Assembly (NCBI RefSeq): GCF_964204645.1
Contig: NC_134032.1
Location: 15,550,275 to 15,614,274, forward strand
DNA from: Tubulanus polymorphus
Taxonomy: Eukaryota > Animalia > Nemertea
Reading direction: 5' to 3'
DNA: 64,000 bases
Part shown: positions 11,588 to 31,335 of the stretch, piece by piece
Layout of the letters: each line of letters starts with the position of its first letter
Numbering within the stretch: position 1 is the first letter of the stretch
Notes under the pieces: model-generated
What the model saw: the letters and a program-made list of their open reading frames with translations, nothing else
What the model was told of the DNA's origin: nothing
The model's database searches: none
Translations under genes and position numbers: made by a program

Positions 11588-12420
11588 GTGTAAATCATTT
11601 GGATAAAGTCGTCATATTACTGAAGTCATCTCTATTTTTAAGCCCTAATTTGTATTTTCAATTCCATTTACTAAGTGTAAGTCATCATTTGGATAAAGTC
11701 GTCAAATTACTGAAGTCATCTCTATTTTTAAGCCCTAATTTGTATTTTTAATTCCATTTACTAAGTGTAAGTCATCATTTGGATAAAGTTGTCAAATTAC
11801 TGAAGTCATCTCTATTTTTAAGCCCTAATTTGTATTTTTAATTCCATTTACTAAGTGTAAGTCATCATTTGGATAAAGTCGTCAAATTACTGAAGTCATC
11901 TCTATTTTCAAGCCCTAATTTGTATTTTTAATTCCACTTACTAAGTGTAAGTCATCATTTGGATAAAGTCGTCACATTACTGAAGTCATCTCTATTTTTA
12001 AGCCCTAATTTGTATTTTTAATTCCACTTACTAAGTGTAAGTCATCATTTGGATAAAGTCGTCACATTACTGAAGTCATCTCTATTTTTAAGCCCTAATT
12101 TGTATTTTTAATTCCATTTACTAAGTGTAAGTCATCATTTGGATAAAGTCGTCACATTACTGAAGTCATCTGTATTTTTGAGTCTCGATTTGTATTTCTA
12201 ATTCAATTTACTAAGTGTAAGTCGTCATTTGGATAAAGTCGTCACATTACTGAAGTCATCTCTATTTTTGAGTCTAAATTACTATTTCTAATTCAACTAA
12301 AGTGTAAGTCATAATTTGGATAAATTGTCACATTACTGAAGTCATCTCTTTTTAAGCCCTAATTTGTATTTCTAATTCAATTTACTTAGTGTAAATCATC
12401 ATTTGAATAAGTCGATTTCG
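11588..12420. repeat. 90-bp minisatellite, about 9 copies
   Basis: Unit GTGTAAGTCATCATTTGGATAAAGTCGTCA...TTTACTAA with period 90. Confidence 0.95.
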
Positions 12421-12632: not shown

Positions 12633-15600
12633 ATGAGCTACGTCATGTACCGGAAGTTGTTATTGTTGACGTTGTCTGCGGCGTACTTGCTCGTCTGTTG
12701 CGCGACCGTTGTTGCCGGTGACTACGAGAATCCGATTGCCGACGAAGATGTAAGTTAAAAGAACCATTGTTGAATTTGTTAATTCGAACTCTGCCATGGT
12801 AACAGAAAATCCATAAACCGCAAGGGCTCGTATCAGAGTTTCTGGTACAGCCTGGATTTAACAGATTATATCATGCTTGCAGTAACAGCACCTCTGATAC
12901 GAGCCCTTGTGATACCAACCACATTTTCCAATTAGTAGAATTGGTTAATTAACACGTAGTTCCGGATTTTCTAATTAGTAAAAAACGGTTAACACGACGT
13001 TTTTGGATTATATTGCTCTCTACAATCAAAGAAATATTTAAACTACCGATTTAAACACGAACAAGACGCTTAGTCTCAGATTACAAGTGCTACATTTCAA
13101 GTTAATTACGAGCGAGTGTTTAATTACTAATCAACTATTTGATACGAACTAATCATTTGTAAATATTTTCCTCTATTGTTGCAATAATAAGAGCCGGCTT
13201 CAGCGGTTGTGTGAATTATCGCTAATGTTAGTGATATTTCGATCCGATAGATGGCGAACTAGTCGATGAGTGATCTGTGTATCCGTTCTTGTTTCAGTCT
13301 CAGTTGAGTGAATGTGATTTGAAGAACTACGTGTGCCGTACATTGATGAGAATATCGAGAGATGAAACAGATTCAGAAACGAGCGAAGATCAAGAGAATT
13401 GTAAATGTGAAATGTGTTCCTCGATTTGGGATGAATCCGACGGCTATTCCTTAACGTGGACCTCCTACGAAAGACGTAAGTTGAAGTCTTAAGATTTCAG
13501 AGATAACTCACTTACCAGGGCTTGGGATGGGGATTGTCATTGATTGACTTGACCAGTATCCAGTAAGAAGGGATTAAGAAAAATCCTTAGCCAGTGCCCA
13601 GTACATCAAACACCAGAGGCCAGTTCCAAACGTACCCTTAAATCTTAAAACTGGTCTTAAGTTGTTAGATTGGCTATAGAATCCAGTTGGTCTTAGACTG
13701 GTCATATAAGTCTAAGACAAAGACCAAAAGTTAGTTCTATAGAAAATCAAACAACTTAAGATCGGTCTTAAAGATTTAAAACCACGGACTTAAGTCACGA
13801 CTGTGAAACTGGCCCCAGTGACCAATTGCCCAAACATTGATTAAACAATGGATTCTGGAGTCCATGGTTAAAGTTTAGCGGTGGACAGTTCATTAAGTGA
13901 CAATTGAAATTGAATTGTTACTATTATTGTCGACCCGTTAATTCTAAAACAATGTTTGAACAACTGGCTCCTAAACGACACGAATATATATCGAACAAAA
14001 CGACTGTTATTGTTATATTCAAATTCTGAGGTCAAGTAAATATGATTCTTTTTCATTTGTTAGTCTTTGCTTATACAATATAACAATATACAAATACTTG
14101 AAAATACTGTGAAAATAATCTATACACACTATATGGCGCTCTGGCAGTCGAGGAATTCCAAAATTTAATCTATTTTTTGTTTATATCAGAGTTTCTGAAA
14201 TTCATTACATTTCATAAAGTTACATTTATACAACACAACAGCCACTGTAGATTCCTGACCTCTACTACAATGTAGTTATCTTCTGAAGAGTTTCTGATAT
14301 CTGTGACAAAGTCGTCATCTTATAGAGAGTTTCTGTGACAGTGTAGTCATCTTCTTGTAGCATTCCTGACATCTGAGCTTAGTCCATTGTTCCATTATCA
14401 TCTATATATCATAAAGAAAAGATAAGAAATAAATTCGAGCGTTGAGTTCATAATATAAGCGCGTAAATCCAGGAAAGGTTGCTTATGACAACCTAGGTTA
14501 GCATCCGCCCCTAAAACCCAACCTTACTTTTCCCTACAATAAAAACTTTAGAAAGGTTGGGTCCCGACCGCACCATCTCTCTGAGCCCACGGCTTACATA
14601 CATGTATCCGGCAATGTTTATGGGGGACCTCACTTTCTCTTTTGGTACTACATTATTTTTGTGTCGTGCCCTTCGCATCCACTAACCTAATTGTGGTCTT
14701 ATGCCATCTGGAACAATGTAGGTATCTTCTGGAGTGTTTCTGATATCTGGGACAACGTAGGTATCTTCTGGGGGGTTTCTGACACCTGCGACAACGACGT
14801 AATCATCTTCTGGAGGATTCCTGACACCTGCGACGATGTAGGTATCTTCTGTAGGGTTAGAGACACCTGCAAAAACGTAGGTATCTTCTGGAGGGTTCAT
14901 GACATCTGGGCCAACGTAGTCATCTTCTGGAGTGTTTCTGATATCTGGGACAACGTAGGTATCTTCTGGGGGGTTTCTGACACCTGCGACAACGACGTAA
15001 TCATCTTCTGGAGGGTTCCGGACACCTGCGACAATGTAGGTAACTTCTGTAGGGTTAGAGCCACCTGCAACAACGTAGGTATCTTCTGAAGAGTTTCTTG
15101 CATCTGGAACAACGTAGGTATCTTCTGGAGGGTTCCTGACACCTGGGACAACGACATAGTCATCTTCTGGGGGATTCCGGACACCTGCGACGATGTAGGT
15201 ATCTTCTGTAGAGTTCCTAACATCTGGGCCAACGTAGGTATCTTCTGGAGAGATCCTGTCGTCAGCTGAAGTAGTTGTTGGCTGAAAATAAATCGGTAAA
15301 CAATTAGGCCTAATAATATATTCGCAAATAAAAAAAATTGAAAACAATAGAAATGTATTATTTATATTGACAAACCTTAAGTGCAACAATGTAGGTATCT
15401 TCTGGAGGGTTCCGGACACCTGCGACAATGTAGGTATCTTCTGGAGGGTTCCGGACACCTGCGACAATGTAGGTATCTTCTGGAGGGTTCCGGACACCTG
15501 CGACAATGTAGGTATCTTCTGTAGAGTACCTAACATCTGGAACAACGTATTCATCTTCTGGAGGGTTTCTGACATCTGGGCCAACGTAGTCATCTTCTGG

Positions 15601-18600
15601 AGGGTTTCTGACATCTGCGACAAGGTTGTCATCTACGTCATCATCTGTAGAGTTCCATACATCTTCGTCATCATCTGTAGAGTTCCATACATCTACGTTA
15701 TCATCTGTAGCGCTCCTTACATCTACGTCATCATCTGTAGCGTTCCTAACAACTACGTCATTCTCTGCAACGTTCCTTACATCTACGTCATCATCTGTAA
15801 CGTTGCTGACACCTGCGACAACGACATCTACAATATCTACATCATCGTAGATTTCACCGTCATCTATGTCTTCGTAGATACCGTCCTGTGTTGTGTAGAT
15901 CCTACCACCAACTCCAGAAGACGAAGGCTGAAAATAAATCGGTTAAACAATTTACAAAATATTCACAAATAAAATAAAATTTAAAAAACAATGTTAATGT
16001 ATTTATATTTACAAACCTGATAGTACATTGCCCCTGGATCGGTCGTGTTGTTACCTATAAACAATAATAGAATGTTAGATAAAATATTACATGTATTTAT
16101 TCTTATTCAAAGAACTTCCTGTTCCCGAAATCAACAGTCAAAGTATATCCAGGAGCACTCAGTTCCATTGTTATCAAATCTAATTTAACTCAAATACCCC
16201 AAACAACCCTTTTACTCTAAAGTAAAACGATAAATTACAAACCAGTATTTCTGTTCCTCAAGATCCTTCGCTGTTTGAGCATTAAGACTGTAGCTATAGC
16301 AATCACTATTACTATAAACAGGAAACCGATCCCAATAACAACTGTCACAAAACTGCTTGTATCTGTATCTGTATCTGAAACACAGAGTATGAAACTCACC
16401 TATATCAAACAGTTTCAAATTACAGACTTAAGTTTATATATTTCATTTCTACTATCTTTATCTTAAGTTTATATATTATATGTTCAACCATTTATCGTTA
16501 AGCTACCTTTAACTTGTATGACCCGCCATAGAAGTATAAACCCAGCACCGCTCCTAGAGTTGTCTGATGTGAACTGTATTCTAATATTTCCAGTGTAGGA
16601 TCGATTACCTGGAGCAGCCGACCCGCAATACTGATAACTCCCTGATGAAGAAATAAAACTGATAAAACTTTATGAATCATGAAAATCATTCACGTTGCAA
16701 AGAGTGTTTAGATTTTTACCCGTTTCATTTTTTATCGTCAACGCGTCAGAGCAACTACCGTTACTATTGGGCTGTACTTGAAAATTCGAGTCAAATGATA
16801 TTTCATGAATCTGCAAAAAGTGTATAAATTCAGCGGTGAATATAATTCAAATGTCAACAGTTATCAGTTAAGAACTGAACCCCTGAGCCCGGTTACATTT
16901 AAATTCTAATTAGGTGATAATTCAAATTAAAAATGGTTAATTCGAGTTTGTTAATTCGATGGTTAAATCGGTTTCACAAATGAGAATTAACAAAAATTAA
17001 CTGATTCAAATTAACTCCAAAGTTAATTCCAAATTAGCTTCCCATAATGCATTAGTATTATAACAAAAACAAAGTATCTTTTATAAAGTTCCCCTGTCGC
17101 TAAGTATCTTAAGATGTTTTGGTGGTACGGGGAAATTTAATTGTTCGTATCCAGGTTTAAGTTAAAACTGAATTTAGCCCCAATTGAGCTCCTACTTGTG
17201 CGGAAAACCCAACAACATTACTTTTCTCATAGACCAAATATTTACCGTGTTTCCAGGTACTGCAATTAACCATCTACAGTCCAGATTGTGGTAGTAGTTT
17301 TCCGGGTAGTTAGGGCTGGATATGACGCCTGATCTACCATTCTGTATTATAGGTGTTTTACTACATGAATCAACTACAAATAAATATTGAATTGAATTGT
17401 TTTATATGTAATTTACTGATTCCATGATAAACTTCTCATTATGAGCTACCTTTCAAATGCCGCCAAAAGAGTTTAAACCCTATCCCGCTCTCAGAGGACG
17501 CGTCTGATCTAAACTGGATGATTACACGACCGGAATAGACACGTGTAGGTGGCGCTGTATAGTTGCAATATTCATTTACTGTAAAGATACCAAGACACAA
17601 ATCAATGACATATTTTTAGCTGGATTTGCAAACGTCTATCAGAAGCAGCCACACCGCAATATTCAATACTCCCTGATGAAAAAAAATAAATCTGATAAAA
17701 CTTTATATCATAAAAATCATTCACGTTGTGAAGAGTGTTTAGATTTTTACCTGATTCACTTTTTATCGTCAACGCGTCATAGCAACGACCTTTACTTGTC
17801 TGTATATGAAAATTCGAGTGAAATGATATTTCAACCACCTGCAAAAATATGAATTCAGGGGTGAATATTATTAAAATGTCAACAATCGTCTACAGAATGT
17901 AATATACCCGTTTATATAGATCAGTTTAAACGGTCAGTTCAGGACTAAACCCCTGAGCCCGGTTAACTTTAAATTCGAATTAGGTGATAATTCAAATTAA
18001 AAATGGTTAATTCGAGTAAGTTAATTCGATTACAATTAATCAAATTCAAATTATCTCCAAAGTTGATTCCAAATTAGCTTCCCATAATGTATATTTGTCC
18101 TATAACATCAACAGAGTTTCATTTATCAAGTTCCTCTGTCGCTATATCTCTTTAGATGTTTTGGTGGTACGGGGAAATTTAATAATGTTCGTTTCCAGGT
18201 TTAAGTTAAAACTGAATTTAGCCCCAATTGAGCTCCTACTTGTGCGGAAAACCCGACAAAATTATTTTCATCATAGACCACCAAATATTTACCGTATTTT
18301 CAGGTGTTTGGATTAACCATCTACAGTCCAGTCTGCGGTAGTAGTTGTTCGGATGGTTAGGGCTGGTTATGACGCCTGATGTACCATTCTGTATTATAGG
18401 TGTTTTACTACACAGCCGCGAGTCAACTACTAATAAATATTGAATTGAATTGTTTTATATGTAATTTACTGATTCTATGATAAACTTCTCACTAATGACC
18501 TACCTTTCAAATACCGCCACAACAGTTTAAACCCACTGTAGCTGATAGAGCTGTCTGATTTAAACTTGATGATTACACGACCGAAATAGTAACGTGTAGG

Positions 18601-21600
18601 TGGCGCTGTATTGCCACAATATACATTCACTGTAAGAATAAACACACAAATTAATGATATATTTTCTATCTGGATTTGAAAACACAAATCTATCAGTAGC
18701 AGCCACACCGCAATATTCAATACTCCTTGATGATGAAATCAACCTTATCTGAAACTTCATGAATCATAAAATCATTCACGTTATGAAGAGTGTTTAGATT
18801 TTTACCAGTTTCACTTTTTATCGTCAACGCGTCATAGCAACCACCATAGCCTCCGAATAAACGAAACTTCGAGTCGAATGATATTTCAACCATCTGTAAA
18901 AATATATGAATATTCAGCATTTAATTAAAGTATAACAGTGAACATGTATGTATTGTTTACAGGATGTAGGACCCGATATATACAGAGTGTCTCAGAAAAT
19001 GTGATACACAATTCATTAACTATTACATGTAATTATTTTCTTAGGGGGGGGGGGAGAATCTGATGAGTCAAAATTCTACGATGAAACGTCGATCTCAAGT
19101 GTGCAAACAGTTACCATATTGAACAAATCTGGAGCAGCTTAATTTGTAAAGAGGACCAACAATTTTATTCAGGAGAAATTTGTCTTAGTTAATCTAATCG
19201 TCATGTCTCAAATCATGTCATATTTGAGCAAGCGGAAATAACGACTGTTTAATTTTTAACGACTCGTTTAACAATTTAACGACTGTTGATGACTTAAGGC
19301 AGGCGTCGCGACTCAAGGCCGACTTACGCGCTCCTGCGACTATCTAGTAATACCGGGATTCGAGCCCACAGTGGTAATGAGATGCGTTTTGAAGTAATTC
19401 TATTGAAGGCTTCATAGAATTTCTTATCGAGAATTTAGGTCTCCATTTGTATTCATGCTGCTTCGCTCAAAAAGACCAGCGTCCAGTTCCGCAGTTGTGA
19501 GTTTACCCGGGCTTAGGTCGGCCTTGCGACAGCTTGTGACTCACTGCGACCGCCAGCGACGATCGCGTCGCAACGACTCACCGACCTACGCTACCTTGCG
19601 ACTGCCAGCGACGCCAGTCACAATGAGTCGCACATGTTCTACTTTCTGCGACACGACACGACCGTCGCAACCGACCTGCGCTACCTTGCGACTGGCAGCA
19701 ACTAGTCGCACACAGTCGCTGACAATCGCGTCGCAACCGACTTACGCCCCCACATGTGACGCAACGCGACGATCGCGTCGCGTCGCTAGGTCGACCTACG
19801 CCCGGCTTAAACAATATGCGTTTTTCTCATAGTCCAAATATTTACCGTGTTTTCAGGAGCTACAATCTCCCATCTACAGTACAGGTTATAACCATAGTTG
19901 CCCGGGTGGTTAGGGCTGGTTATGACGCCTGATGTACCATTCTGTATTCTAGGTGTTGCACTACAAGTCGAGTCAACTGCAAATAAATATTAGATTTATT
20001 GTTTTATATGTAATTTACTGATTCTATGATAAACTTCTCACTAATGAGCTACGTACCTTTCGAATACCGCCAAACGAGTTTAAACCCTTTGTAGCTACTA
20101 GAGTTGTCTGATCTAAACTGGATGATTACACGACCGGAATAGACACGTGTAGGTGGCGTTGTATAGCCGCAATATTCATTTACTGTAAATATAAACACAC
20201 AAATCAATGATAGATTTTCAGTAGCAGCCACACCCTGTAGCCAATAATCCCTGATAAAGAAACAAATCCGATAATTCAAAAAAATATCTTAGCAGCCACA
20301 CCGCAATATTCAATACTTCCTGATGAAGAAATAAATCTGATAAAACTTTATCTATCATAAAAATCATTCACGTTATGAAGAGTGTTTAGATTTTTACCGG
20401 TTTCACTTTTTATCGTCAACGCGTCATAGCAATGACTGCTACCGCGACGTTTGGGCTCTATTTGAAAATGCGAGTCAAATGATATTTCAACCACCTGCAA
20501 AAATATATGATTTCAGTGGTGAATATTTTTCCAATGTCAACAATCGTCTACAGAATGTAATATACCCGTTTATATAGATCAGTTTTAACTTTAACCCGGA
20601 GTTATCAGTTCAGAGCTAAACGCCTGATTGTACGATATCCTGTACACTCAAAAGTGGTGAATGGATAATAAGATAAAAACCCACTATTTACAAATTAAAA
20701 TAATTTTAAAGTGGAGAATTAATTTATTCAAAAAATACAAAAGACACAACGTTTCGATCACACCCTAGAGATCATCGTCAGGTGACGATGACCGTGGCGA
20801 GACCATTTGTACATAGTCATAGTGGGTTTATCATAGAACAAATATTTACCGTATTTTCAGGTGTTTGGATTAACCATCTACAGTCCAGTCTGGTGTAGTA
20901 GCCGTTCGGGTAGTTAGGGCTGGATATGACGCCTGATGTACCATTCTGTATTATAGGTGTTTTACTACATGAATCAACTACAAATACATATTGAATTGAA
21001 TTGTTTTATATGTAATTTACTGAATCCATGATAAACTTCTCATTATGAGCTACCTTTCACAAACCACCACAACAGTTTAAACCCTTTATGGTAGCTACTA
21101 GAATTGTCTGATCTAAACTGGATGTCTACCTCACCGGAATAGTAGCGTGTAGGTGGCGCTGTATTGCCACAATATACATTTGCTGTAAAGATAAACGCAC
21201 AAATCAATGATATATTCTTAGTTATTTCTGACATAATAAATCGCAGATATTTCTTCATTCATTCGTTTAACATCGAGTCTTAAATAGAATGATTCGATTC
21301 TTACTGGAATAGCCGACGTATATGTATAATGTGTCGCGGTAGCAATAACCACTAGATGTATTTGAATCCACTTCGAAAATAGGATCAAACGATATTTCTA
21401 ATATCTGAAATTAAAATTAGTCACGTGGTTATTTTATTATTGTTCAAATATTTCTGCTACATTCTAACTGCTAGTTGTCATTAAGGGTTACCCCTGTTTA
21501 TAATATGTGATGTAATGTAATAGTTAAACAGTTCAGCACCCGATTTGGTGCTGGTTCCAGTGGAGATATAAATTCCACACTTTTTACAATAGTAAAATTT

Positions 21601-24600
21601 TAATCAGTCCAAATTGGACTGATAAAAATATTTTTGATTATATTTCTAGTTTTCCTAACAGTGAAAGTTTTTCTAGTTTTCCAACCGTGAATATATTTCA
21701 GAACTTCTTGTATTTTATATTTACCATGTTTTGAGGTGTATCAATCCGCCATCTACAGAACAGATTGTCGCCATAGTTACCCGGGTAGTTAGGACTGGTT
21801 ATGACGCCAGAAGTTCCGTTCTGTATTCTACCTGGCCACCAGCGGCTACAACTCGAGTCGATGTCATCTGTCAATACTGTATAGAAAAATACCCGTAGAT
21901 CTATAAACTTATAAAGCGGTAGTTAGTAGGACTAACTCAACTGATAATGAATTTAGTTAGCCTTCGGGTCGAGGTTAATACCAGTCTATAAAAAAGAGAA
22001 CTGGTCATCAGTTCCCACACCACATTGATCACCAGGTCACCACAACTGACTAGTCATCAGTCACCATAACTAAATAGTCACAACACTGACCAGACAAAAA
22101 ATCAGTCATCGCTTTATGGTATAGTGGTTAGAGTGATCGCCCGGTTATCGTGAGGTCACGGGTTCGAGGCTGAGGTTAGGCTTGTTAACATCCTCTAGCT
22201 AGGTGCTGATGCTAAGTTCCCGGGATAAAAAATATCTTTTGATTTTGATTAATGAAATATGTTTTTAATCTTTTAAATCATGTATATTGTGGTTTTTAAA
22301 CCTATTGTCAATTCTCCTAACGTCAGTTTGACCGGTGCGATTCTACCAATAGGTAGTTGCTGTTTTGAGAAAATGTATTCATTTTTTGAAATAAACAACT
22401 GTCCTTGAAACGAGTTCCGGAACAACGCGTCATACTGGCCGTTTAGTGAGGTAATAAAGTGACCGTTTGAGACCATTAGTTTAGAGAGTTCCTCAGATTG
22501 GCACCCGCACCGCGGCATTGATCAAACAGTTCTAACCTATGTGACGGCACTGATCTCAATAATTTAACTCTAAAATTCATCTACATCAACAAATTTAATC
22601 AGTATTAAGTGATATTGATATTATTTGCGCGCTTACCTTGAGAATTCTCGACGAATAAAATTACAGCGACCACAAACAAACTCTTCATCATCAACTCCAT
22701 ATTCAAACAGATACTCGCGATAAATACTCAACAACTGAACTGTGAACTACTACCAAAAGACTGCGCCTTTTCACAGAGACCGATACGATCAGCTTTATGA
22801 ATCAGAAAACTGAGTTGGTCTTTAAATAGTAATTTCATTTCCTTGTTTCAATCTAGAAACGATAAGAATCGCTGTTGTCACTCCGCCAGCATCATCATCA
22901 TTTATCATCATTATATGTTCATGTAAATACTGGCTTTATTTAGAGAATTATTAAGGATTAAATTGTCTCTCCATCATCACACTCAGTGTAACACAAATAG
23001 ATAAAGCCAAAAAACCACATAAACAGGATCTTCCTTATGTACCTTTGATAAAGTTAATGGACGATGAATAGAATCAAAACTTCGAAGTAAAGAAAACTGC
23101 ATTTTAGATAATAGTTTAATTTCCTTAATTATCTCTCTGATTTATGGTATAATCACCAGGATAATTATCTGCCCATCAGGAAACACAGACACTGGTGCTG
23201 CGGGATATTTATTTATAAACTGATAAATCAAACTTTTAAATAAAAACCAATATTTCGATGACTTCACTATCAAACGTCGCGTGTCAATCTCACAATAAAA
23301 AACCCGAAATAAAACAAGGAAATACAAGTCTAAATTACTCCGAACATTCAGTTTTACATTAAGGGTTTGACATATATGTTGGTTTTATTTCTATGATACG
23401 TAAAGACAATAATTCAGTTTTCTCCTAAATACCATTCAGTTCAGTTGTTATCAACACGGTAATTACTGTTTGAAGTTTTTAGTGCGTTTTTGATATTTCT
23501 AAAATTTTTCATCGCGTCTTTAACATTGTTTTATTCCTATGATAGAATGTTAAGACAAAAATAGTTAACTGATTTACGGTGGATAGTGGTAGATTTGACT
23601 ACTTGTCTCATAAGTACAGCTCCATTACTCCGATGTAGCTGCTTTGTACTAATAGCGAAAGCTACATAATTTACCCGCGGAAGCTACTAATTAAGGCCAG
23701 TCAAATCAACTATGGAACTAAGTTGTTCTTAGATATTGATTATACCCTGGAGCCAGTTGCATAGTCGTGACTTAAGTCCAAAAGTGGTCTTAAATCTTAA
23801 GACTGGTTATATTAGCTACAGAACTAAGTTGGTCTTAGACTGGTCTTAAGTCTAAGCCATGACTATGCAACCAGCCCTGGTTGCACAGTCGTGGCTAAAA
23901 GTCCAAAAGTGGTCTTAAATCTTAAGACTGATCTTAACTTGTTAGTTTGGCTATAGATCCAATTTGGTCGTAGACTGGTCTTGTCTAAGCCCTGACTGTG
24001 CAAACAGATCCCAGGTTAACCAACAGCTCATCCAAAACTAAGCTAGTGAAAGTCTACATCTCGTTGAATCGACTCCGGAATTTTCCACTCTTCCAGGTGA
24101 CCAACAGTTTCAATACAAATTCTGTTCAAACATCACAAACACGCGACAGTGCCAGAACGAAACCATCGCTGCTCAGCTAATTACCGATGTGAAACGTTGG
24201 AATCCACGAATGGACGCGGTATTCTGTCGGTGTCCACGTGACGAGTATTGGTTGGACGGATGGAGACGAGACAATGGAGTCTGGAGTTACATTTACACCT
24301 GTTATAAGGTATTATCATATATACAGTCATTTATTATATCTAAGCAACGTTTCGGCATAGGGACTATAAGCCATCATCTGGCGTAAAATGAATTAACAAG
24401 ATTTGAGCCTGATGATTATGGCTTATAGTCTTAAGCCGAAAACGTCGCTCAAATATATAAACCTTTTACTCAATAATTTTACACTGTTGGCTGAATTATT
24501 GTAAGATCTACGTGTAGTGGTAAAAGTGCAGATCTGCACCTCTCCGCGTAAACGGTTCAATCAATTACATTAAATATCATTGTTTCAGATTCAAAATGTC

Positions 24601-25021
24601 ATCAGCAATTCATACTTTGCCATTGGTTAATTTTAAGATATCTTCACTAGAAAGATTTTTATCCTGGATTCTGTCATTCAGTAGATTGCGTCAATCACGA
24701 GAGGTGCGGATCTGCACTTTTACCCGTGTAGTTCATTTCAAGGTCATGACGAATGTCGCCAGTTTTTAAAATTGTTTAACGTTTTTCATTGTTGTGTCGT
24801 TGCAGCCGACTTGTGAGCGTCGATCGCCTTGCGTAAAACATTATTTCGATTACGACGGTAAAACGACGGCGTTCGAATTCGAATGCTCGTGCGATAACGG
24901 CTTCCATTGTCCGACCAATCAGAAACTGGGAGACGCGTTTTTCACCGATATCGATTCGGACGAGAAATTCATGTACGGCTATTGCGAACGTAATAATAAC
25001 CGGAAGTACGTAGAAGTATAG
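12633..25021 (+). CDS. argos: Secreted Argos/giant-lens-like cysteine-rich protein (about 240 aa, 4 coding exons)
   Basis: Exons 12633-12749, 13298-13475, 24097-24308, 24806-25021, all GT-AG and phase-consistent (0,1,0). Signal peptide MSYVMYRKLLLLTLSAAYLLVCCATVVAG. 16 mature Cys arranged 6+4+6, with motifs CKC..C..DGYSL..QYKFC, FCRCPRD..YTC and CERRSPC..CSC..FHCP..YGYC matching recalled Drosophila Argos motifs (DGHTI..HYKMC, HCRCPRN, CQRKQPC..CQC..HRCP..SGYC). AATAAA at 25433. Family-level call only; orthology untested. Confidence 0.85.
12821..12909. mobile_element. 89-bp MITE in an Argos-like intron
   Basis: 18-bp TIR CAAGGGCTCGTATCAGAG / CTCTGATACGAGCCCTTG. Confidence 0.7.
13617..13815. 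mobile_element. MITE of the GGCCAGTT family (CAG TSD)
   Basis: AGGCCAGTT...AACTGGCCC flanked by CAG; internal ACTGGTCTTAAGTTGTTAGATTGG motif shared with 7030-7240 and 23750-24010. Confidence 0.6.
14379..22700 (-). CDS. Type I transmembrane receptor: signal peptide, 5 CUB domains, TM, tyrosine-repeat cytoplasmic tail (about 1061 aa, 21 exons), nested antisense in the Argos-like intron
   Basis: Phase-consistent GT-AG exons: 22700-22637 (signal MELMMKSLFVVAVILFVENSQ); CUB1 21876-21725, 21404-21305, 21182-21054; CUB2 20977-20850, 20494-20398, 20182-20057; CUB3 19976-19846, 18893-18806, 18629-18504; CUB4 18426-18293, 17838-17751, 17578-17450; CUB5 17373-17246, 16810-16720, 16641-16507; TM 16374-16243; tail 16054-16017, 15927-15376, 15281-14687, 14401-14379. 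If the last intron is not spliced, the stop is at 14682. No internal stops. CUB signature C..SGVI(T/S)SPNYP..Y..L.C.W.I..P..EISF..F..C.D.L.I..YCG..F.SD..GF.L.W is present 5 times. Confidence 0.88.
14687..15927 (-). CDS. Two cytoplasmic-tail exons built from 39/42-bp coding repeats (VRNPPED[T/D]Y[V/I]VAG/PD)
   Basis: Exon 15927-15376 (184 codons) and exon 15281-14687 are open in the frame set by the upstream exons; repeat-length variation is in multiples of 3. Confidence 0.85.
16243..16374 (-). CDS. Transmembrane exon of the CUB receptor
   Basis: DTDTDTSS-FVTVVIGIGFLFIVIVIAIATVLML-KQRRILRNRNT: 25 uncharged, mostly hydrophobic residues followed by a basic stop-transfer cluster. Confidence 0.88.
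19505..19810. mobile_element. GC-rich MITE-like insertion in a CUB-gene intron
   Basis: Imperfect TIR CCGGGCTTAGGTCGGCC / GGTCGACCTACGCCCGG, with internal GCGAC/GTCGC repeats. Confidence 0.55.
20745..20784 (-). ncRNA. Minimal hammerhead ribozyme remnant (same family as 8358-8399)
   Basis: Minus strand CAC-CTGACGA-T-GATC..GATC-GAAAC-GTT-GTG; stem I is only 3 bp. Confidence 0.55.
22111..22200 (+). mobile_element. tRNA-derived SINE head or tRNA pseudogene
   Basis: A-box TGGTATAGTGG and B-box GGTTCGAGGC at tRNA-like spacing; no intact cloverleaf. Confidence 0.5.
23750..24010. mobile_element. Two adjacent MITEs of the GGCCAGTT family
   Basis: GAGCCAGTTGCATAGTC...GACTATGCAACCAGCC flanked by CTG, followed by a second similar copy. 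Confidence 0.6.
24344..24454. ncRNA. Inverted pair of hammerhead-like motifs (Penelope pLTR-like remnant) in the last Argos-like intron
   Basis: Plus strand 24401-24454: ATTTGAGC-CTGATGA-TTAT-GGCTTA..TAAGCC-GAAAACGTC-GCTCAAAT (8-bp stem I). Minus strand 24382-24344: GC-CAGATGA-T-GGC..GCC-GAAACGTT-GC (core mutated). Confidence 0.6.
24519..24724. mobile_element. MITE with 26-bp TIRs and 8-bp TSD
   Basis: TIR GGTAAAAGTGCAGATCTGCACCTCTC / GAGAGGTGCGGATCTGCACTTTTACC; exact TSD CGTGTAGT at 24511-24518 and 24725-24732. Confidence 0.88.
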
Positions 25022-27439: not shown

Positions 27440-30400
27440 CCGATGAGTTCACCAGACAGCTTCTCACAGGGGGTAGATTCTGCAGAGCTTGGAGGATGTT
27501 GAGTTCACCAAACAGTGTCTCACTGGAGGTAGATCCTGCAGCACTTGGATGTTGAGTTCACCAGACAGTGTCTCACTGGGGGTAGATTCTGCAGCACTTG
27601 GATGTTGAGTTCACCAGACAGTGTCTCACTGGGGGTAGATTCTGCAGCACTTGGATGTTGAGTTCACCAGACAGTGTCTCACTGGGGGTAGATTCTGCAG
27701 CACTTGGATGTTGAGTTCACCAGACAGTGTCTCACTGGGGGTAGATTCTGCAGCACTTGGATGTTGAGTTCACCAGACAGTGTCTCACTGGGGGTAGATT
27801 CTGCAGCACTTGGATGTTGAGTTCACCAGACAGTGTCTCACTGGGAGTAGATTCTGCAGCACTTGGATGTTGAGTTCACCAGACAGCGTCTCACTGGGAG
27901 TAGATGATCTCAGCGTGAATGATAGAAAAATAATGAAAAGAAATACATGTTAGAATATATTCATACAGTAGACAGAGTAAGGTTTAACTGCTTTGTGGTA
28001 AAAACATGTGCTTCAAATCAGGAATTATTTGTTCCTGAATCTCTTGTGTCAAATGATACATGTATTTCAAAGTGTGACAGTCCAGCTCGCATGTTTGAGT
28101 TCATTTCCACGAAATACATTACATGATGAGGCTGCTATTTAGAATTGAATCACATAAAATACTCAATTATTTCACCAGCTGATTTGTCCATTAAAACCTA
28201 GGAATTTCGAATATATTTCTAAGATGCCAAATTCCTCGTCTAAGCTAAACTCGCCCCTAGTGGTTTATAAAGACGACCGACACCTCTTTCTTTCTTTCTT
28301 TCTTTCTGTTTACTCTTTTTTTGCGCCCGTGAATTATGCTTAAACATGTTCGAGGTGATTTTTTCAAACTGTTTTAAGGTGCGTCCCCGCAGACAACTGA
28401 GGCTAGGATAGAAATGTCCGTATCTCTTGATGCACATGACTACCTTATCGAGTAAGTGATCATACACACGATACTCCCAGAGTCCGCGGTTCAGTAAAGG
28501 AGCGTCCGATGCCCTCATGCTATCGTCCTCCCCGGGTGGCCTTTCGCCATCCCTGTCACCGAGCATATTCACTTTAAGGGCTACCACCCCCCTTACCGCC
28601 ACCACTATTTTTCTTCCCGCCGTCTCGCAAAGACAGAAACGAGTTTAACTCAGAAAAGGAAGAACCCGAATGGATTCAATTTGATTTATACGTGTGGTCA
28701 GGTTTGGGTTCGGATCCCGAGGCACCGAGCACAGTGTATTTCAATGTGACCATTTTGTCACCTTGCGTCGCTGATTCAGAATAAGTTGCCAAAGTGAGAT
28801 TAGAAATAAATCAGCGATTTAAATCATTTAGAAATCAACAAATAAAAAATCTGGATTTCATGAATCCAATGAAAACCAATTCTAGACTTCGTGATTGAAC
28901 AAATGAATTTTGACAGTTATTACATAAGAAAAAGGTTTAGAAATATTGAGCCATTTGACAACCACACATTGAATCATGTATTTAATCAGAAATCACTCAA
29001 AACAGTCAAAAGTTCTCATCGACAACTGGTCAAATTGTTATCTTTACTTCACATCTATAGAATTTGAGGTTTTCAAAATCAAGGAGAATTCAAACCTCTG
29101 AAAAAATTCATATCAGCAATTTTTAGGTGTAATTTATCATTGCTTACCTTCTGTAGCGCATGGATGTCAAATTTATCAGTCTCACACAGATCATCTCCTT
29201 GGATGTTGAGTTCACCAGACAGTGTCTCACTGGGGGTAGATTCTGCAGCACTTGGATGTTGAGTTTACCAGACAGTGTCTCACTGGGGGTAGATTCTGCA
29301 GCACTTGGATGTTGAGTTCACCAGACAGTTTCTCACTGGAGGTAGATCCTGCAGCACTTGGATGTTGAGTTCACCAGACAGTGTCTCACTGGGGGTAGAT
29401 TCTGCAGCACTTGGATGTTGAGTTCACCAGACAGTGTCTCACTGGGGGTAGATTCTGCAGCACTTGGATGTTGAGTTCACCAGACAGTGTCTCACTGGGG
29501 GTAGATTCTGCAGCACTTGGATGTTGAGTTCACCAGACAGTGTCTCACTGGGGGTAGATTCTGCAGCACTTGGATGTTGAGTTCACCAGACAGTGTCTCA
29601 CTGGGGGTAGATTCTGCAGCACTTGGATGTTGAGTTCACCAGACAGTGTCTCACTGGGGGTAGATTCTGCAGCACTTGGATGTTGAGTTCACCAGACAGT
29701 GTCTCACTGGGGGTAGATTCTGCAGCACTTGGATGTTGAGTTCACCAGACAGTGTCTCACTGGGAGTAGATTCTGCAGCACTTGGATGTTGAGTTCACCA
29801 GACAGCGTCTCACTGGGAGTAGATGATCTCAGCGTGAATGATAGAAAAATAATGAAAAGAAATACATGTTAGAATATATTCATACAGTAGACAGAGTAAG
29901 GTTTAACTGCTTTGTGGTAAAAACATGTGCTTCAAATCAGGAATTATTTGTTCCTGAATCTCTTGTGTCAAATGATACATGTATTTCAAAGTGTGACAGT
30001 CCAGCTCGCATGTTTGAGTTCATTTCCACGAAATACATTACATGATGAGGCTGCTATTTAGAATTGAATCACATAAAATACTCAATTATTTCACCAGCTG
30101 ATTTGTCCATTAAAACCTAGGAATTTCGAATATATTTCTAAGATGCCAAATTCCTCGTCTAAGCTAAACTCGCCCCTAGTGGTTTATAAAGACGACCGAC
30201 ACCTCTTTCTTTCTTTCTTTCTTTCTGTTTACTCTTTTTTTGCGCCCGTGAATTATGCTTAAACATGTTCGAGGTGATTTTTTCAAACTGTTTTAAGGTG
30301 CGTCCCCGCAGACAACTGAGGCTAGGATAGAAATGTCCGTATCTCTTGATGCACATGACTACCTTATCGAGTAAGTGATCATACACACGATACTCCCAGA

Positions 30401-31335
30401 GTCCGCGGTTCAGTAAAGGAGCGTCCGATGCCCTCATGCTATCGTCCTCCCCGGGTGGCCTTTCGCCATCCCTGTCACCGAGCATATTCACTTTAAGGGC
30501 TACCACCCCCCTTACCGCCACCACTATTTTTCTTCCCGCCGTCTCGCAAAGACAGAAACGAGTTTAACTCAGAAAAGGAAGAACCCGAATGGATTCAATT
30601 TGATTTATACGTGTGGTCAGGTTTGGGTTCGGATCCCGAGGCACCGAGCACAGTGTATTTCAATGTGACCATTTTGTCACCTTGCGTCGCTGATTCAGAA
30701 TAAGTTGCCAAAGTGAGATTAGAAATAAATCAGCGATTTAAATCATTTAGAAATCAACAAATAAAAAATCTGGATTTCATGAATCCAATGAAAACCAATT
30801 CTAGACTTCGTGATTGAACAAATGAATTTTGACAGTTATTACATAAGAAAAAGGTTTAGAAATATTGAGCCATTTGACAACCACACATTGAATCATGTAT
30901 TTAATCAGAAATCACTCAAAACAGTCAAAAGTTCTCATCGACAACTGGTCAAATTGTTATCTTTACTTCACATCTATAGAATTTGAGGTTTTCAAAATCA
31001 AGGAGAATTCAAACCTCTGAAAAAATTCATATCAGCAATTTTTAGGTGTAATTTATCATTGCTTACCTTCTGTAGCGCATGGATGTCAAATTTATCAGTC
31101 TCACACAGATCATCTCCTTGGATGTTGAGTTCACCAGACAGTGTCTCACTGGGGGTAGATTCTGCAGCACTTGGATGTTGAGTTTACCAGACAGTGTCTC
31201 ACTGGGGGTAGATTCTGCAGCACTTGGATGTTGAGTTCACCAGACAGTTTCTCACTGGGAGTAGATTCTGCAACACTTGGATGTTGAGTTCACCAGACAG
31301 TGTCTCACTGGGGGTAGATTCTGCAGCACTTGGAT
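27440..31335. repeat. 1919-bp near-identical tandem duplication plus three blocks of a 53-bp minisatellite
   Basis: Unique segment ~27897-29198 is repeated at ~29816-31117 (identical ORFs at 28240 and 30159). The 53-bp unit TTGGATGTTGAGTTCACCAGACAGTGTCTCACTGGGGGTAGATTCTGCAGCAC occurs at ~27445-27903, 29199-29822 and 31118-31335. Confidence 0.95.

Follow-up and report, generated by a model that had tools for sequence, protein, structure and literature searches.

An Argos-like gene of Tubulanus polymorphus carrying an antisense CUB-domain gene in its second intron

Gene structures at the locus

The window analysed here, a stretch of 64,000 nucleotides from the nemertean Tubulanus polymorphus, contains a four-exon Argos-like gene on the plus strand and, entirely within the second intron of this gene, a minus-strand gene for a CUB-domain protein with a long tyrosine-bearing tail. 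We refer to the former as the host and to the latter as the guest. The host gene (LOC141910135, contig C8) encodes 240 amino acids and has the following parts, with positions numbered from the first letter of the window and a slash marking each exon border.

12633-12749, plus strand: Argos-like exon 1; ATG, signal peptide, 39 codons, identical to residues 1-39 of the public protein P0001; donor GAT/gtaagt
13298-13475, plus strand: Argos-like exon 2; 59 codons and 1 nt, first two-finger domain; acceptor tttcag/, donor GAC/gtaagt, the exon ending in phase 1
13476-24096, plus strand: Argos-like intron 2; 10.6 kb, containing the entire antisense CUB gene
24097-24308, plus strand: Argos-like exon 3; 2 nt and 70 codons, 100% identical to residues 100-169 of P0001; acceptor ttccag/
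24806-25021, plus strand: Argos-like exon 4; 71 codons and the stop TAG (25019-25021), third domain

The spliced host product agrees letter for letter with the public Tubulanus polymorphus protein XP_074656956.1 (P0001, 240 aa). This exact match bears out the proposal of the first-pass annotation that the exons at 13298-13475 and 24097-24308 are joined in frame across the long intron, and the join from 13475 to 24097, which reads ..SYER-R-DQQFQYKFC.., sits within a motif conserved among homologues (TW.H.ER.DW.VQYRFC). An intron is present at the matching position in the Argos-like homologues of Lineus and of the chiton Liolophura. As judged by eye, the hydrophobic N-terminus of the host protein comprises residues 1-28 and is followed by a Cys-rich body with no transmembrane segment, which is the make-up of a secreted protein.

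The guest gene consists of 20 coding exons on the minus strand between 22700 and 14682. All of its introns have GT-AG borders and the phases are consistent; the joined exons (3168 nt) are read through 1055 codons before the first stop. The intact antisense gene reported in the first-pass annotation was thus recovered, with 20 coding exons instead of the 21 exons counted there, and an untranslated exon may have been included in that count. The predicted protein of 1055 aa comprises a signal peptide, five CUB domains, one transmembrane (TM) helix and an acidic tail of 407 aa, which are distributed over the exons as follows.

22637-22700, minus strand: CUB gene exon 1; ATG at 22700, signal peptide MELMMKSLFVVAVILFVENSQ, donor CAAG/gtaagc
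21054-21876, minus strand: CUB domain 1; exons 21876-21725, 21404-21305 and 21182-21054; Pfam CUB E 9.8e-7
20057-20977, minus strand: CUB domain 2; exons 20977-20850, 20494-20398 and 20182-20057; Pfam CUB E 1.7e-6 and 8.7e-4
18504-19976, minus strand: CUB domain 3; exons 19976-19846, 18893-18806 and 18629-18504
17450-18426, minus strand: CUB domain 4; exons 18426-18293, 17838-17751 and 17578-17450
16507-17373, minus strand: CUB domain 5; exons 17373-17246, 16810-16720 and 16641-16507
16243-16374, minus strand: TM exon; FVTVVIGIGFLFIVIVIAIATVLML followed by KQRRILRNRNT; weak donor G/gtttgt
16017-16054, minus strand: 38-nt mini-exon; NNTTDPGAMYYQ; links the TM exon to the tail exons in frame
15376-15927, minus strand: tail exon A; 184 codons, acidic D/V repeats and then PPED[TDE]Y repeats
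14682-15281, minus strand: tail exon B; 199 codons and the stop TAG (14684-14682), with 39-nt repeats encoding PPED[TD]Y[IV]V motifs

We ran the Pfam searches of the guest exon by exon and used the joined model for the frame check and the motif counts. The exon pieces matched Pfam CUB with E values of 1e-6 to 1e-3, and PF00431 reached 29.5 and 28.7 bits against a cut-off of 21.4. The signal peptide, CUB matches above the Pfam cut-off and a single TM helix together characterize a generic CUB type I membrane receptor, and the domain order given in the first-pass annotation (signal peptide, five CUB domains, TM helix, multiple tyrosines) is supported by these matches and by the translated 20-exon model. 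The guest exons are conserved one by one among the paralogues described below; exon 1, for example, has 100% amino acid identity with paralogues B, C and D. Three sequencing runs of unrecorded type were compared with positions 13250-19249; their contigs cross the introns without joints at the predicted exon borders, so the runs behave as genomic DNA.

Relationship of the host protein to Argos

Direct searches with the Pfam Argos family, PF11581, stayed below its threshold: the full-length host protein gave no match at E<=1, and exon 3 alone scored 13.2 bits (E 0.096) against a gathering cut-off of 25. A six-frame scan of the whole genome with the Pfam Argos model gave no match, and the controls were equally silent. 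Sequence searches of the PDB with host exons 3 and 4 singly gave chance matches only. Around the host protein we found a conserved lophotrochozoan family of Argos-like proteins, and when a profile of 21 family members was compared with the PDB, Drosophila Argos (3c9a/3cgu) was the sole match (E 1e-7, 35 bits), profile positions 80-221 being aligned with chain residues 70-221. The nearest named Atlas cluster to the host protein bears PF11581. A profile search of a 5.8-billion-protein set for named arthropod Argos had a Biomphalaria homologue as its sole addition. A protostome Argos-like family has already been described in 2025 (PMC12514838), and the Capitella protein R7U7Q8 given there as Argos-like is present among our homologue matches (P0034).

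The predicted fold matches Argos. The AlphaFold (AF2) model of the host protein has a pLDDT of 85.7, and in a Foldseek search with this model four Argos chains were the only matches with E<0.001 (1e-7 to 3e-6, over 207-214 columns). VIA-align of the model with Argos gave Z scores of 7.5 and 7.4 over 164-166 aligned residues, in comparison with 4.3 for a conotoxin of the two-finger (2FTX) fold and at most 3.1 for all others. The global TM score against Argos is 0.34-0.39, a low value that we attribute to a presumably different orientation of the domains. On the basis of the family profile and the predicted model, the first-pass naming of the host is correct: the protein is genuinely Argos-like, and its three two-finger (2FTX) beta-sheet domains are arranged as in Argos.

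By homology, the secreted host product would most likely act as an extracellular clamp on a small disulfide-rich ligand, such as a growth factor of the EGF type. It is possible, if rather doubtful, that the protein shares with Argos the two-finger fold alone and has another task, for instance that of a secreted factor resembling a toxin or a neuropeptide, and does not bind an EGF ligand. The identity of about 20% to Argos and the Pfam score under the cut-off would be in keeping with this, cone-snail toxins have the same fold, and the authors of PMC12514838 call the function of protostome Argos-like proteins unknown. However, all three host domains align to Argos, including the third domain (D3), which Argos needs for binding Spitz and which is absent from the toxins. 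This recently recognised and still uncharacterised family gains a nemertean member with an exact gene structure, the four-exon layout being conserved in nemertean and chiton members.

The tail of the guest protein

According to the motif count, the 407-aa tail contains 26 tyrosines, 19 of which follow two acidic residues and nine of which lie in YxxP. These motifs make the tail, most likely, a candidate multivalent docking platform for SH2 adaptors, which would act downstream of a kinase of the Src/Abl type.

The joint between the TM exon and the tail deserves attention in this connection. The donor G/gtttgt is poor, and when it is left unspliced the frame runs into a TAA stop 5 nt on (16238-16236), giving a tail-less product; because of this weak donor, a tail-less isoform may dominate. 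We think it unlikely, nevertheless, that the CUB gene is right in outline while the long tyrosine tail lies outside the main product (a tail-less receptor or decoy ending at 16238) or this copy is silent. Tail exon A does have a pN/pS of about 1, as such a reading would lead one to expect, but the frame is restored exactly by the 38-nt mini-exon, which is 100% conserved in paralogues B and D, and the tail frames are open over 184 and 199 codons, with comparable open frames in the paralogues. The weak donor form gtttgt also recurs after the mini-exon and after tail exon A. The guest belongs to a CUB receptor family that is specific to this lineage, expands in tandem and has very long tails with tyrosine motifs; its members are candidate multivalent SH2 docking receptors.

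The nest in relatives and in duplicated copies

At the homologous loci of Lineus, the closest genome compared, and of Liolophura, we found neither a nested gene nor a CUB-coding signal. A compact Argos-like paralogue in the same genome, called P here (C8:12.5555-12.5569 Mb), likewise has no nested gene. In Lineus and Liolophura the intron homologous to host intron 2 spans roughly 0.5 and 4 kb, respectively, and in paralogue P about 0.36 kb.

Within the Tubulanus genome, the nested pair lies in a segmental duplication that spans 27 kb or more. Three further copies of it exist (B, C and D), and their collinearity with the window extends from about 11.7 kb to a point past 38.5 kb. The segment 23.67-26.37 kb, in which host exons 3 and 4 lie, is missing from all three. 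Three near-identical relic copies of host exon 2 are found elsewhere on C8, and in copies B, C and D the relics of exons 1 and 2 are damaged by a stop, by deletions and by the replacement of a Cys with Phe. The CUB gene of copy B projects to an open frame of 1266 aa; the heuristic projections of paralogues C and D lose frame, possibly through a fault of the heuristic and not through real damage. The pN/pS between copies A and B is about 0.64, with an alignment that is uncertain because of the repeats. The adjacency of host exon 2 and the CUB 3' end is repeated at three other loci, and that of the CUB 5' end and exon 3 at a fourth; since both adjacencies recur elsewhere, the layout is not an accident of assembly.

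Origin and meaning of the nesting

The locus probably holds two independent intact genes, head-to-tail on opposite strands, with an Argos-like host and a CUB-Tyr guest, the nest being most likely a historical by-product. We propose that the nest was formed within the Tubulanus lineage, once the host and the compact paralogue had separated, and was then copied in the segmental duplication, the host gene being whole in the present copy only. An accident of insertion, which the first-pass annotation had offered as its alternative, fits best with the absence of the nest in relatives and the decay of the host in the three sister copies. Guest and host appear not to be functionally tied, because the nest has been duplicated and the host has decayed in three copies.

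The physically coupled signalling module that was also suggested in that annotation is not supported. In this scheme a ligand trap and a phosphotyrosine scaffold receptor stay together because they serve one tyrosine-kinase pathway, with nesting as the means by which their expression is coordinated or kept mutually exclusive. A part in receptor-tyrosine-kinase signalling is plausible for both proteins, and the host/CUB adjacency has been copied several times; furthermore, transcriptional interference by antisense transcription, which antisense nesting can produce according to PMC5174743, is the one interaction that the layout itself would predict. We nevertheless consider such a module very improbable, because Lineus, the chiton and paralogue P have no nest, and because three of the four block copies have no host exons 3 and 4 and decaying exons 1 and 2 while CUB paralogue B stays open. 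In genome-wide searches, moreover, the other CUB-Tyr family sites on C8 and C2 gave no match to Argos-like exons 2-4, and the CUB gene has no specific link to CDCP1 or EGFR.

At this single locus a regulatory link may exist, given that one copy has preserved the nest and that the block as a whole persists in four copies. That the antisense nesting serves here as a switch, in which transcription of the Argos-like trap across the CUB gene, or of the CUB gene across the trap, makes the two products mutually exclusive in each cell, is extremely unlikely; if it did, some cells would weaken EGF-type signals in their surroundings and others would carry a multivalent phosphotyrosine scaffold receptor on their surface, and the three sister copies without the host gene would have been freed from such control.

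Returning to two independent genes as the preferred reading, the four block copies, in three of which the host has decayed, constitute a natural experiment on nested genes. Current views are not overturned, and the main use of the locus therefore lies in annotation and as a worked example: taken as a whole, this is a nested pair of the ordinary sort whose duplication history is instructive.

Comparison with known systems

Drosophila Argos (giant-lens; PDB 3C9A and 3CGU) is, like the host product, a secreted protein with three two-finger beta-sheet domains and conserved cysteines. The fly protein has 444 aa, whereas the Tubulanus protein has 240 aa and no counterpart of the long flexible inserts of fly Argos. 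The identity between them is about 20%, and the host falls under the cut-off of PF11581.

CDCP1, with which the guest had been compared in the first-pass annotation, combines a CUB-like ectodomain with a single TM helix and a tail that bears tyrosines and serves as a Src substrate. The guest likewise has a CUB ectodomain, one TM helix and a tyrosine-bearing tail, but the two differ in domain number and tail motifs. We rejected the guest as a member of the CDCP1 family and find no specific relationship, since PF23665 (CDCP1_CUB_6) is sub-threshold (E 0.054; 13.5 bits against a cut-off of 27) and the generic CUB family PF00431 scores better (E 1.7e-6).

Like the guest, the vertebrate scaffold receptors DCBLD1 and DCBLD2 (ESDN) are type I membrane proteins that combine a CUB ectodomain with many YxxP motifs in the tail; in DCBLD, Fyn/Abl phosphorylate these motifs and CRKL binds to them (PMC6029619). 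In contrast to DCBLD with its one CUB domain, the guest has five, which account for its whole ectodomain, and exon-wise Pfam scans found no LCCL or discoidin domain. Its tail differs from that of DCBLD in the 39-nt tandem repeats and the acidic PPED[TD]Y core, and the resemblance is a likeness without demonstrated orthology.

As in other nested antisense pairs of animals, the guest is completely enclosed by an intron of a gene read from the other strand. According to PMC3814207 and PMC5174743, nested genes are frequent and their usual source is the insertion of duplicates into long introns. The present case, in which a young member of a duplicating family occupies an enlarged intron, matches this route. 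Unlike the usual nested pairs of animals, however, the Tubulanus nest has been duplicated again, leaving relics of host exons beside the guest paralogues, and the order of events has thereby been recorded in the genome.

The Argos-like host gene

The gene that carries the nest in its second intron (13476-24096) is a plus-strand Argos-like gene, LOC141910135, which encodes 240 aa in four exons. The window occupies C8:15,550,275-15,614,274 (C8 being contig NC_134032.1) within a 268-Mb genome, and the source organism on record for the host protein is the nemertean Tubulanus polymorphus.

Exons of the host gene (window positions)
12633-12749, plus strand: exon 1, canonical borders
13298-13475, plus strand: exon 2, canonical borders, phase 1 at its end
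24097-24308, plus strand: exon 3, canonical borders, first two bases completing the codon split from exon 2
24806-25021, plus strand: exon 4, canonical borders

With the phase-1 end of exon 2 completed by the first two bases of exon 3, the join reads ..SYER-R-DQQFQYKFC.., and the in-frame connection from 13475 to 24097 read in the first-pass annotation is confirmed by borders, phases and a database entry. When exon 3 alone was searched against 1.84 billion representatives, a 240-aa protein was found with 100% identity at residues 100-169, and the four-exon model equals this entry, XP_074656956.1 ('uncharacterized protein LOC141910135'), in every letter; therefore, the 10.6 kb splice is already within the public gene model. 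A motif conserved in host relatives spans the same junction. Contigs from three sequencing runs of unrecorded type cover the introns and have no joints at the predicted exon borders, so these runs behave as DNA.

In host intron 2, a very high-copy element lies at 13637-13818, where the summed contig depth reaches about 1e5, as against about 1e2 in the neighbourhood. Loose ends are numerous, back-joints occur at 13637, 13681 and 13818, and the element is probably an interspersed (short) or foldback repeat.

The Argos-like identity proposed for the host was upheld by several comparisons, though not by Pfam, whose Argos model gave 13.2 bits on exon 3, below the cut-off of 25, and no match on the full-length protein. 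Members of the host family are secreted, measure about 230-290 aa and occur in Lineus, a chiton, Capitella, gastropods and others; a profile of 21 of them, compared with the whole PDB, matched solely Drosophila Argos (3c9a/3cgu; E 1e-7, profile positions 80-221). An AlphaFold model built on the family alignment was confident (pLDDT 85.7, pTM 0.75); with this model, Foldseek listed below E 0.001 only four Argos chains (E 1e-7 to 3e-6; 207-214 aligned columns, 20% identity), the next entry being uPAR at E about 0.4, and VIA-align gave Argos Z scores of 7.5 and 7.4, with the two-finger conotoxin Tx33.1 at 4.3 and all others no higher than 3.1. The nearest named cluster in ESM-Atlas comes from arthropods, and a third of its members carry PF11581.

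About 1800 protostome Argos-like 'two-finger' proteins were described in 2025, including Capitella R7U7Q8, and the authors stress that no function is known for any of them (PMC12514838); R7U7Q8 is also one of the host's homologues in our protein search (P0034). The host gene thus adds a new member to a family already known but uncharacterised. Judged from homology with Argos, which extends over all three domains, its product would be an extracellular clamp on an EGF-type or similar ligand.

The nested CUB gene

On the minus strand of the intron, reading of the sequence gave a guest gene, CUB-Tyr, of 20 coding exons, all with AG/GT borders and an unbroken chain of phases, which total 3168 nt (1055 codons) with a single stop at the end.

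Features of the guest gene (window positions)
22700-22637, minus strand: signal exon, translated model
Five CUB domains, minus strand: three exons per domain, phases 1-0-1-1 repeated, exon-wise model
16374-16243, minus strand: transmembrane exon, translated model
16054-16017, minus strand: 38-nt mini-exon, 100% conserved in two paralogues
15927-15376, minus strand: tail exon A, open frame
15281-14682, minus strand: tail exon B, open frame

Pfam matching was run on exon pieces, the joined model serving only for the frame check and motif counts, and the pieces match Pfam CUB above cut-off. The intact antisense gene for a signal, five CUB domains, a transmembrane segment and a multi-tyrosine tail, noticed at first pass, thus holds. 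Membership in the DCBLD or CDCP1 family was rejected on exon-wise Pfam scans.

The tail of 407 residues (22% Asp+Glu) is encoded by degenerate 39-nt tandem repeats and contains 26 Tyr, 19 of them shortly preceded by two or more acidic residues; its motifs are YxxP (nine), Y[IV]VA (eight) and YVVV (three). Since the transmembrane exon ends in a weak donor, G|gtttgt, with a TAA 5 nt beyond, a tail-less isoform is possible; the mini-exon and tail exon A are likewise followed by a gtttgt donor.

Several further traces were seen around this gene. Short open stubs (..SGSIEYCGVAA..) at 20290-20345, 18700-18745 and 17640-17690, in introns of CUB2-4, look like the beginning of the third CUB5 exon (16641-16507). 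A CUB3 intron holds a GC-rich insert (19455-19832), unlike its surroundings in composition, with long open frames in both orientations (125 aa on the plus strand, 78-82 aa on the minus strand). A decayed tail-like stretch (..DDDFVTDIRNSSEDNYIVVEVRN..) lies downstream of the stop at 14215-14400, and the stop itself is overlapped by a good donor-like site, TTAG|gttagt (14682-14690); the stretch may be a former or alternative 3' exon.

Segmental duplication and fate of the copies

Members of the CUB-Tyr family are numerous on C8, with some also on contig C2. Argos-like exon 2 recurs in three extra, nearly identical copies, each some 1.2-1.3 kb past the 3' end of an opposite-strand CUB-Tyr paralogue; exon 1 is likewise copied. 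DNA comparison shows window positions from about 11.7 kb up to 38.6 kb or more to be one copy (A) of a large segmental duplication of at least 27 kb, whose right end lies beyond the sequence compared.

Other copies of the duplicated block
C8:16276633-16300000 (16.277 Mb): copy B, collinear with A
C8:15097700-15120000 (15.098 Mb): copy C, collinear with A
C8:15873515-15850001 (15.873 Mb): copy D, inverted, collinear with A
C8:9313564-9320267: copy E, partial, inverted, matching window 19.06-26.63 kb

Copies B, C and D are 87-92% identical to A, and all lack window 23.67-26.37 kb (about 2.7 kb), which holds host exons 3 and 4. Copy E, probably a dead fragment, joins the CUB 5' end with Argos-like exon 3 (99% aa identity) and the 3' part of exon 4 (residues 36-66 only); the A-type order is accordingly ancestral, and B-D stem from a copy that had undergone a deletion.

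The orphan copies of exons 1 and 2 show ongoing decay: a TAG at codon 6 in B, a 15-nt deletion in the signal peptide plus a Cys-to-Phe change in C, and a 6-nt deletion in D. The non-coding DNA flanking them is equally alike (95-100%), so their similarity is due to recent exchange rather than selection. In copy B, projection of the CUB gene gives a 1266-aa frame free of interruptions that encodes seven CUB domains; the projections for C and D lose frame, of which the projection heuristic may be the cause. Between A and B, pN/pS is about 0.64, suggesting weak constraint or diversification.

Repeats also differ among the copies. A 90-bp tandem repeat just upstream of the Argos-like start codon (12000-12414, 4.7 copies) is a single unit in B-D, and arrays of an about 53 bp repeat downstream of the gene (27444-27905, 29198-29824 and 31117-31335) are much longer in B and D. 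In the same downstream region, ORFs 28240-28605 and 30159-30524, about 1.9 kb apart, are identical 121-aa open frames.

Coupled module or incidental nest

The nest's anatomy is real, and both genes look functional. The nesting, whose conservation the first-pass annotation had proposed to examine, is not conserved: in Lineus longissimus the homologue shares the four-exon layout, with an intron 2 of roughly 0.5 kb, intron 2 of the chiton homologue is 4 kb, and both loci are devoid of a called nested gene and of any CUB-coding signal. Paralogue P, a compact, divergent Argos-like gene of T. polymorphus (C8:12555531-12556885, minus strand), whose exons 2-4 share 38-43% identity with the host and span no more than 1.4 kb, its introns being about 0.4-0.5 kb, has no nested gene either.

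The same annotation had raised a physically coupled tyrosine-kinase-signalling module of host and guest. The sole interaction between them that the layout itself would predict is transcriptional interference. The guest family flourishes where the host is no longer intact, host-family genes elsewhere have no guest, and nested antisense pairs are a common outcome of duplicates landing in introns (PMC3814207, PMC5174743); we therefore consider a functional module very improbable.

Comparison with known systems

As predicted from its motifs, the guest would be a receptor with a CUB ectodomain, and its repeat tail would turn into a multivalent phosphotyrosine platform. By analogy, the functionally closest systems would be DCBLD1/2 (PMC6029619), along with the substrate domain of p130Cas.
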